NCBI RefSeq assembly: GCF_016433145.1
Contig: NC_058131.1
Location: 394,560,720-394,624,719 of the forward strand
DNA: 64,000 nucleotides
Source: Gracilinanus agilis
Taxonomy: Eukaryota
Reading direction: 5' to 3'
The notes under the pieces were generated by a model that worked only from the letters and a program-made list of their open reading frames with translations, did no database searches and was not told the DNA's origin. The position numbers were made by a program, and so were the translations under genes. This document shows positions 5,921 through 8,352 of the stretch, in pieces. How positions within the stretch are numbered: the first letter of the stretch is position 1; each line of letters starts with the position of its first letter.

Positions 5921-5971
5921 TGACGCGGTTGGACAGAGGCAAGCTGTAGGGGAGGAGCCTGGGCTCTAAAT
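5921..5971 (+). promoter_or_regulatory. Core promoter motifs: half-CRE (TGACG 5921-5925), GGGAGGAG box (5950-5957), TATA-like TAAAT (5967-5971)
   Basis: Motifs seen directly. Their order resembles my recollection of the human SCA12 upstream flank (GGGCTGCTGACGCGGTTGG...GGAGGAGCC...TTTAATGC). Confidence 0.55.
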
Positions 5972-6057
5972 GCTGCAGCCTCCAGTACAGCGCCCCGGCA
6001 GCCGCCTCCTGCTGCAGCCGAAGAAACCGTAGTGGCTACAGCAGAAAGCAGAGGAGG

Positions 6058-6099
6058 CAGCAGCGGCAGCGGCAGCAGTGGCAGCAGCAGCAGCGGTAG
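6058..6099 (+). repeat. Interrupted CAG/CGG triplet tract, orthologue of the human SCA12 repeat
   Basis: CAG CAG CGG CAG CGG CAG CAG TGG CAG CAG CAG CAG CGG TAG, followed by CTGTAAGCGCACGCGTGTGGGTGTGAG, which resembles the human 3' flank. It lies about 700 bp upstream of the Bbeta1 ATG. Confidence 0.88.
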
Positions 6100-6630
6100 C
6101 TGTAAGCGCACGCGTGTGGGTGTGAGTGTGTGCACCCGCCCGCACGCCAGCCTGGCCGCAGGGGCCAGCCCGGCTCCCAACCCCCCAGCCGGCGTTTCTA
6201 TCACCGCCCAGTTAGAGCCACCCACCCAGAGCGGAGACCTAGACCCTCTCCCTGCGTGGAGTGGCGTGGCGTGTTGGGGCGAGCTTCGGTCATCCTAGTC
6301 CACCTCTCCACCCGAGGGAGTCCCGATCCAGAAAGACACCATTTTGTAGCTGGACGCTTTCCGAAAAGGGCGGCGGGGGGGTGGGTATCTTTGGTGCCAC
6401 TGCCAACCAGGGGGGACCTGTTGGGCATCTCTCCCCAGAACGCGAGCTCCTGCCTACTCCGAGCATCTCCTCCCCGGGCTGGACCAGATCTTGCCCGGCT
6501 CAGCGCATCCTTCCAGAGCGACAGTAGCTGCTGCAGCATCTCTGGCAATCGAATCCCTAGGAAGTGGTGGCGGTAGTAGCCGCAGCAGTGTTGAAAACCT
6601 CGAGTGTAGGAGGTGACATTTCGAATTCTT

Positions 6631-6677
6631 CTCTTCTCTTCGCTCTCCTCCTAATCCTCCTCCTGCTCTCCGGGAAG
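6631..6677 (+). promoter_or_regulatory. 3' splice site of the ATG-containing exon (pyrimidine tract, CTAAT branch point at 6651-6655, AG at 6676-6677)
   Basis: Long C/T tract and a branch-like CTAAT about 23 nt before GAAG|GAC. Confidence 0.6.
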
Positions 6678-6681
6678 GACT

Positions 6682-6723
6682 ATGCTGTGCTCCCTCCTGC
6701 TACCCTGTCCCCCTCTCCTCTGA
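6682..6723 (+). other. uORF1, 13 aa ([13 protein letters not shown])
   Basis: ATG at 6682 with A at -3; TGA at 6721-6723. Confidence 0.55.
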
Positions 6724-6744
6724 GGCTGGTGGCGGGGAGAGATC

Positions 6745-6813
6745 ATGGATACTTGTCTGCTGGCTTTTAGTTTCCACACAAGTAACCCTGCTGTCAATGG
6801 AGGAGGACATTGA
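6745..6813 (+). other. Overlapping uORF2, 22 aa ([22 protein letters not shown])
   Basis: ATG at 6745 in strong context (ATC-ATG-G). It is out of frame with the main ATG at 6797, and its stop TGA (6811-6813) lies inside the CDS. Confidence 0.65.
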
Positions 6814-6866
6814 TACCCGCAAAATCAACAACAGTTTCCTGCGAGATCACAGCTATGCTACCGAAG
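6797..6866 (+). CDS. PPP2R2B: First coding exon of PP2A regulatory subunit B55beta (Bbeta1 isoform); 70 nt, phase-1 donor
   Basis: Translates [23 protein letters not shown]+G, the known B55beta N-terminus, followed by GAAG|GTAATG. The next exon (ADIISTVEF) was not found in the window. Confidence 0.97.
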
Positions 6867-7838
6867 GTAATGCCACCAGCCGCATTTAACCCCGTGGGGC
6901 CTCCGCTGAGAGGAACTTGTGGGGTGCGAGCATTCTAGAAAGCGGGGTTGGTGGTGCAGGGGACCGGAGGGTAATGAGCATCGTGGGAGAAGAGCTCCCT
7001 GCCCAGCAGCTCTGGGGTTGGGGTGGAGAAGGGAGTGTGTGTGACTGGGGGCTCCGCCTGCAGGCTCCTCTGCTATGTCAGCGATCTTGCGCCGCTTTGA
7101 CCATCCAGGGCCTGCCTGGGGAGATCAGGTTTGGAGCAGCAGGTGGACCAGGAGCGCACTTGAGTTAAAGGCCCGAAGAGGGGCCATATCTCGAGGGTCA
7201 TTTTCCAAATAGAAGATGACCCCAGAGAATCTTAAGTTGCCACCCCCACTTAAGGTGATCAGGCTTCGAAGGTTGAATTGAGATGGACTGGTAGGTGAAA
7301 GGCTCTGAAAGGCAGCAGAATGTTGGTGCATGCCTTAGCGATTCTGTGGAAGGCAGGCTTTCATTTCCTGACCATTTATCTCTCAGACCCGGTGGATACC
7401 TGGGTTGGCTATCAGTCACGCAAAGGCCCTCTGCAAACAAGGACTATGCAAAGAATAGAGTGGTTGGGGCATGGGGGACATAGATGTAGGTAGTGAGTCC
7501 TATCTAGTCTGACACGTGGGGCAAGGAAGACAATCAGCTGTCCTTAAAAAATTATGATTATGAATTCTGCAGGGGCAGTTTTTGCTGAATCAACAGCCAG
7601 CAGGAAGGAAGTATGCTCAGCAGCCCAGCTTTGCCAGGAGGTGAAATTGTCTTTGCTTCCTCACTCAGCTTGTTCTTGGATTAACCTAAATCCTAAGCAG
7701 GCTGGCAGAGCCGGCAGGTGAATTTTCAGTATTCTTTGGTGTGGAGGTTTTCTTAAATTCCAAAACTTTTCCATTGCTGTTTTTCATTTCTATTCTTCTG
7801 CCCTAAAACCTATGGATGCTGACTATATAGAAATGTAG

Positions 7839-8184: not shown

Positions 8185-8352
8185 NNNNNNNNNNNNNNNN
8201 NNNNNNNNNNNNNNNNNNNNNNNNNNNNNNNNNNNNNNNNNNNNNNNNNNNNNNNNNNNNNNNNNNNNNNNNNNNNNNNNNNNNNNNNNNNNNNNNNNNN
8301 NNNNNNNNNNNNNNNNNNNNNNNNNNNNNNNNNNNNNNNNNNNNNNNNNNNN
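8185..8352. other. Assembly gap (168 N)
   Basis: Run of N. Confidence 1.

Follow-up and report, generated by a model that had tools for sequence, protein, structure and literature searches.

Two upstream open reading frames of conserved geometry before the Bbeta1 start codon of PPP2R2B, and a proposed reinitiation-dependent throttle on B55beta

Both an excess and a shortage of B55beta harm neurons, and PPP2R2B, which encodes it, is the SCA12 gene. Whether the leader in front of the Bbeta1 start codon limits how many ribosomes reach it, and by what kind of mechanism, is the question raised by the window analysed here (the whole 64,000-nt stretch of Gracilinanus agilis DNA), in which two short upstream open reading frames (uORFs) stand directly before the Bbeta1 AUG and the second runs across it. 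Work on the PPP2R2B locus has so far dealt with the CAG repeat, transcription, RNA foci and RAN translation (e.g. PMC11070597). No description of PPP2R2B uORFs was found in the literature searched under uORF, ribosome profiling and ISR topics; co-mentions of the gene with uORF topics in reviews were unrelated table entries, and the Ribo-seq catalogue supplements of PMC10032668 and PMC4568590, from which PPP2R2B is absent, draw mostly on tissues other than brain and are thus uninformative here. Pairs of uORFs with an overlapping second member are already known; what is new is their presence in this gene, an unusually clear record of conservation and a geometry that departs from the textbook one.

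Anatomy of the leader in the Gracilinanus agilis window

The Bbeta1-specific first coding exon of PPP2R2B contributes 23 residues and is closed by a donor GT at 6866-6867 (Table 1); a run of 168 N (8185-8352) lies within the first intron. An earlier note on this DNA had described two uORFs in front of this exon, and on re-reading of the window its coordinates for uORF1, uORF2 and the main AUG proved exact to the base. The Kozak contexts that it gave for the three start codons are those listed in Table 1. The sequence also bears out its statement that uORF2 is not in frame with the main ORF and stops 14 nt beyond the main AUG; uORF2 is read in frame 2.

Table 1 Features of the PPP2R2B leader and Bbeta1 exon in the Gracilinanus agilis window
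Feature	Position	Strand	Details
ATG-free part of presumed 5′ leader	6033-6681	+	CpG-rich island; CAG/CGG tract at ~6058-6105
Pyrimidine tract and AG, possible conserved 3′ splice site upstream of uORF1	6626-6677	+	AG at 6676-6677
uORF1	6682-6723	+	ATG 6682, TGA 6721-6723; 13 codons including stop; context aggactATGc (A-3/C+4)
Spacer, uORF1 stop to uAUG2	6724-6744	+	21 nt
uORF2	6745-6813	+	ATG 6745, TGA 6811-6813; 22 codons including stop; context gagatcATGg (A-3/G+4)
B55beta (Bbeta1) CDS start, exon part	6797-6865	+	weak AUG context ctgtcaATGg (T-3/G+4)

A pair of ATGs within 115 nt is nothing unusual in a single sequence. The start codons of the two uORFs (uAUG1 and uAUG2) are the only ATGs across the 764 nt preceding the main AUG (6033-6796). 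The 649 nt of 6033-6681 hold none, against 4.6 expected (P=0.005, dinucleotide shuffles), while the opposite strand of the same segment holds seven, and the gap from 5970 to 6682 (712 nt) is the longest between consecutive plus-strand ATGs in the whole 64-kb window. In the eutherian-like loci described below, uAUG1 is preceded by 580-690 nt or more that contain no further ATG. As far as the sequences can tell, this is what a long leader looks like when uAUGs have been purged from it and two of them spared.

Geometry, peptides and RNA structure across eleven lineages

In the window, frame 0 stays open over the 60 codons that precede the main AUG, and this open frame, 90 codons in all, served as query for a protein search, which returned 30 proteins, all of them gene-caller ORFs that pass from exon 1 into intron sequence in contigs from other animals. 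The 11 lineages compared are the window itself, the Damaraland mole-rat (Fukomys damarensis, NCBI assembly), five further eutherian-like lineages (L007, L008, L009, L010-L012 and L013/L014), three sauropsid-like loci with divergent flanks (L002-L004) and the alpine tree frog (L005/L006, from runs listed in its genome paper, PMC12171712). Each L-series locus was recorded from one to four contigs, from one run or two. Clusters that are possibly human were left out (P0009/P0035, with 33 and 28 contigs, and P0002/P0003/P0019/P0031-34, from ENA metagenome sources, with up to 35 contigs), and human sequence is not among the 11 lineages. The window differs at several sites from the sequence shared by the eutherian-like loci and is nearer to that sequence than to the sauropsid-like loci; the 19-mer GATCATGGATACTTGTCTG of the earlier note is identical in mole-rat and four of the five other eutherian-like lineages. 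A protein search with the 68-aa leader ORF (6564-6767) gave no matches, and one with P0030 for spliced transcripts gave mostly exon-2 matches, drawn from all four paralogues, without a usable mRNA contig; in teleosts the protein begins MDEEID. Matches to Rfam were chance ones, below gathering scores, among them one to isrG at the 5′ edge of the CAG/CGG tract.

A multi-species alignment of both uAUGs and the uORF2 stop had been proposed in the earlier note as a check, and in the alignment made here all three are kept in every lineage, down to frog. uAUG2 lies exactly at -52 relative to the main AUG in 11 of 11 lineages and opens an ORF of 22 codons with its TGA at +15 to +17, and its A-3/G+4 context is retained throughout. 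uORF1 starts at -115 to -119 (-108 in frog), and its length is 13 codons in all amniote-like lineages, against 12 in frog; a purine stands at -3 of uAUG1 in all 11 lineages, within a full ACCATGG in the eutherian-like loci. The spacer between uORF1 and uORF2 measures 21 nt in the window and in six eutherian-like lineages including mole-rat, 22, 22 and 25 nt in the sauropsid-like loci and 17 nt in frog, and 69-77 nt separate the uORF1 stop from the main AUG, which has T/U at -3 in every lineage. The sauropsid-like loci carry an extra AUG at -55. Indels are found in the spacer and upstream of uAUG1, with none inside uORF2 and none inside amniote uORF1; owing to those in the spacer, uORF1 and uORF2 do not stand in the same relative frame in every lineage.

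uORF1 therefore has the form of a short 5′ uORF of the ATF4/GCN4 type (12-13 codons, purine at -3), and uORF2, running out of frame from -52 to +17, that of an overlapping downstream uORF in all 11 lineages. By its sequence it looks like a strong inhibitory overlapping uORF (uoORF) before a weaker main AUG (A-3/G+4 as against U-3/G+4), with its stop beyond that AUG. All six uAUG columns of the alignment are invariant across the 11 lineages, whereas of all columns in the 125 nt that precede the main AUG only 29% are (P=4e-4, naive hypergeometric test). Since the leader is depleted of ATGs, the pair is retained in ten other lineages and its columns are invariant, the twin uAUGs are not a product of chance.

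Codon-position counts, taken as the minimum numbers of changes at positions 1/2/3 over the 11 lineages, separate the main ORF from both uORFs. The main ORF has 0/0/9 and its protein is identical in all lineages, whereas the unique part of uORF2 has 6/7/8 and uORF1 has 9/13/10, which is not the pattern of a conserved peptide of the nascent-peptide stalling type. To judge from these counts, neither uORF peptide is under amino-acid selection. A conserved uORF1 tail, LP[CF]PPL, with possible Pro-Pro stalling, was attractive with eight sequences and fell on the addition of L010-L012, in which LPCPPLL is replaced by LPRAPLP and the codon-position bias is gone (2/4/5 in the C-terminal half). An in-frame N-terminal extension of B55beta was also considered: frame 0 lacks codon-position bias and has a stop at -54 to -52 in the sauropsid-like loci, and both other frames across the uORF2 region are equally flat, so that an extension or an alternative coding use of the block is excluded. 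The middle of uORF2 changes at about the same rate as synonymous sites in neighbouring codons (21 changes at 48 sites and 7 at 15, respectively). Within the main ORF, codons 2-8 (6800-6820) show no synonymous change in the 11 lineages, as against nine in codons 9-23; the silent stretch spans the overlap with uORF2 and its TGA.

If the block were kept for RNA structure, a protein-binding site, exon splicing signals or a DNA element, the ATGs could be passengers. Conservation around uAUG2 does extend past the AUG, a possible splice acceptor lies just upstream, and RNAalifold draws two hairpins, one from just past uAUG2 to about -9 and a second enclosing the main AUG and the uORF2 stop. A conserved RNA hairpin is nevertheless unsupported: the fold energy is unremarkable against shuffles (z = -0.89), the covariation term is +0.94, and both partners have changed in just three pairs, all of them in a poorly kept stem inside uORF1. 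Moreover, in L013/L014, where uORF2 opens with MES instead of MDT, three bases of one hairpin arm are changed without compensation, yet AUG and frame persist. The middle of uORF2, drifting near the synonymous rate, is free of indels in all 11 lineages, unlike the spacer; this is the signature of a kept frame, and the passenger account is thus very unlikely. An inverted repeat at 6792-6815 (tgtcaatg / cattgata, 8-nt loop) would pair the main AUG with the uORF2 stop; this hairpin is beyond a covariation test, because all its bases are invariant. On the evidence of the alignment, selection has preserved start codons, ORF lengths, the uORF2 frame and the distances, and not the peptides, with no sign of selection for structure; in other words, the comparison indicates that the twin uORFs are kept for their position, independently of what they encode.

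A proposed throttle by reinitiation, weighed against other mechanisms

Given this conserved placement, the uORF pair very probably holds down translation of B55beta. Two plain, additive repressors would do so in the simplest way, each uORF losing ribosomes and B55beta arising only from leakage past both uAUGs. Most uORFs simply repress, and both uAUGs here have a purine at -3, with the full strong context on uAUG2. Leakage past ACCAUGG at uAUG1 (in eutherians) and AUCAUGG at uAUG2 to a main AUG with U-3 would, however, yield very little product for an abundant neuronal protein, and the narrow range of uORF1 length and of distances amid drifting sequence would be left unexplained, which makes this account unlikely.

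Reinitiation needs a new ternary complex, and its likelihood grows with the distance scanned, as in GCN4 and ATF4; in Kozak's intercistronic-length experiments reinitiation reportedly rises with distance. Short uORFs let part of the 40S subunits resume scanning. Set against this background, a fairly probable reading of the conserved geometry is that the pair acts as a constitutive, reinitiation-dependent throttle, not induced by stress, that sets how many ribosomes get to the B55beta start. uAUG1, met first and with a purine at -3 (ACCAUGG in eutherians), would engage most scanning ribosomes, and after the 13 codons of uORF1 a share of 40S subunits would return to scanning, as its length suggests. 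With uAUG2 only 17-25 nt on, most of these re-scanning subunits would pass it before picking up a new ternary complex; by the time they reach the main AUG, 69-77 nt after uORF1 ends, they would be competent again and could reinitiate on B55beta. Ribosomes leaking past uAUG1 would be caught by the strong uAUG2, translate over the main AUG and be lost to B55beta, and the few passing both uAUGs would meet a weak main AUG. The suggestion in the earlier note that uORF1 may let ribosomes bypass uORF2 is plausible on this anatomy, given the distances of ~21 nt and ~73 nt.

A one-parameter sketch of ternary-complex reacquisition against distance scanned was used to compare this geometry with that of ATF4. 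For B55beta, modelled output stays on a plateau of 0.32-0.43 of re-scanning ribosomes while the recharging length varies five-fold, and beyond that range drops to 0.21 and lower; capture at uAUG2 is at most ~45%, and no induction appears. For the ATF4 geometry, the share of such ribosomes that arrive at the main AUG goes up from 0.08 to 0.25, a roughly three-fold induction. The short spacer would thus leave B55beta output buffered against a fall in ternary complex, or mildly lowered by it. That the fixed geometry serves as a buffer or band-pass, keeping B55beta synthesis near constant over a range of ternary-complex levels, is put forward tentatively, as a possibility well short of even. If it holds, output would be set chiefly by reinitiation capacity (eIF3 retention, DENR-MCTS1/eIF2D), and a dosage-sensitive neuronal phosphatase subunit would have retained a design unlike that of ATF4 for ~350 million years.

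In ATF4, a spacer of ~87 nt between uORF1 and uORF2 lets uORF2 capture nearly all ribosomes until stress delays recharging. An ATF4-type delayed-reinitiation switch at PPP2R2B would have unstressed ribosomes restart on uORF2, whereas eIF2alpha phosphorylation would cause uORF2 to be skipped and B55beta to rise. The topology is shared, since the ATF4 leader likewise places a short uORF before an out-of-frame uORF that runs across the main AUG, the first letting ribosomes pass the second (PMC7494916, PMC11058473), and deep conservation shows that the arrangement matters. ATF5 and yeast GCN4 show the same order, with a first member expected to be positive. The distances differ: the conserved 17-25 nt found here in 11 of 11 lineages is far from the long spacer that would give restart on the inhibitory uORF at normal ternary-complex levels. 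Because so short a spacer leaves few ribosomes recharged at uAUG2 even without stress, there is little for stress to relieve, and in the model the 69-77 nt to the main AUG become limiting under stress, so that B55beta output falls, from 0.43 to 0.21-0.33, and is not induced. The dimensions of the uORFs also depart from those of ATF4, uORF1 having 13 codons as against 3, and uORF2 22 codons with a 17-nt overlap as against ~59 codons with ~83 nt; under low ternary complex a flat or negative response is predicted for PPP2R2B, in contrast to the induction of ATF4. No literature was found that ties PPP2R2B to ISR-resistant translation, and a switch of the ATF4 type is distinctly unlikely here. Of the ATF4-like design proposed in the earlier note, the tandem and overlapping anatomy stands, while the stress-inducible switch does not fit the short spacer or the flat-to-falling model response.

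The same note had held that ribosomes translating uORF2 cannot reinitiate on B55beta. The out-of-frame overlap behind this claim is real, but the wording is slightly too strong, as the stop is 14 nt away and 40S or initiating complexes are reported to move back and forth over ~15 nt (PMC11058473). Such mobility would be needed for a termination-coupled restart, in which ribosomes ending uORF2 slide back 14 nt and start B55beta, so that uORF2 delivers ribosomes; the constant stop at +15 to +17 and the lack of synonymous change in codons 2-8 would be in keeping with it. Backward restart after a 22-codon ORF is, however, generally inefficient, and the conservation of the uORF2 stop is weak evidence, because its codons are fixed by the protein except for one wobble base; a restart of this kind is highly improbable.

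The proposed throttle has partial counterparts elsewhere. uORF7 of thrombopoietin (THPO) resembles uORF2 in having a strong context, lying out of frame and ending past the main AUG, and it keeps translation of a dosage-sensitive protein low. Unlike THPO, PPP2R2B has a second short uORF at a fixed small distance upstream, which would probably relieve part of the block; no disease mutation or reporter data of this kind are known for PPP2R2B. In C/EBPalpha/beta, start-site choice is made via a short uORF near the main AUG; as in PPP2R2B, this uORF is short and conserved, and the distance to the next AUG, not the peptide, decides the site of restart. The AUG that is skipped leads to a long protein isoform in C/EBP and to a 22-codon decoy in PPP2R2B.

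A tetrapod-conserved gate before the Bbeta1 start would be an unrecognised layer of B55beta dosage control. Leader variants that make or destroy a uAUG, or indels that shift the frame of uORF2, could alter protein output, and the gate offers an experimental handle through reporters or oligonucleotides masking a uAUG. The locus would also be a natural case of what a very short spacer between uORF1 and uORF2 does, as a counterpoint to ATF4.

A possible splice acceptor, other leader ORFs and hints of exceptions

A pyrimidine tract and AG lie 4-17 nt before uAUG1 in every lineage (4 nt in the window), and every other lineage has a better copy than the window does, for example CCTCCTCAG followed by G, CCTTGCAG followed by G and CTTTGCAG followed by A. 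The GenBank gene model of the mole-rat joins an upstream exon exactly at the AG before uAUG1, and similarity between the window and mole-rat begins at ~6625. The AG in the window may therefore be a conserved 3′ splice site, in which case both uORFs would lie within every Bbeta1 transcript.

Other ORFs occur further upstream. In the window, a third upstream ORF (5970-6032; MLQPP..., 20 codons) starts just before the CAG/CGG tract. A similar ATG in the eutherian-like loci (cctttaATGc, MHQPPPAS...), at -695 to -722, reads into the repeat; the SCA12 RAN-translation constructs of PMC11070597 have a single ATG mutated, which is probably the equivalent of this one. The sauropsid-like leaders contain a putative long AUG-initiated Q-rich ORF of 135-191 codons (L002:1443-1851, L003:340-915, L004:1019-1487), which in L003 runs into the frame of uORF2 and shares its stop.

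Two ENA proteins from the clusters left out of the comparison hint at exceptions. P0003 reads MDTCLPASGS, and a C run shorter by 1 nt joins its uAUG2 to the main ORF in a single frame. P0002, which shares the intron tail of P0003, reads LPFTT where others have GPWCSPT, so that uAUG1 may be absent from it.
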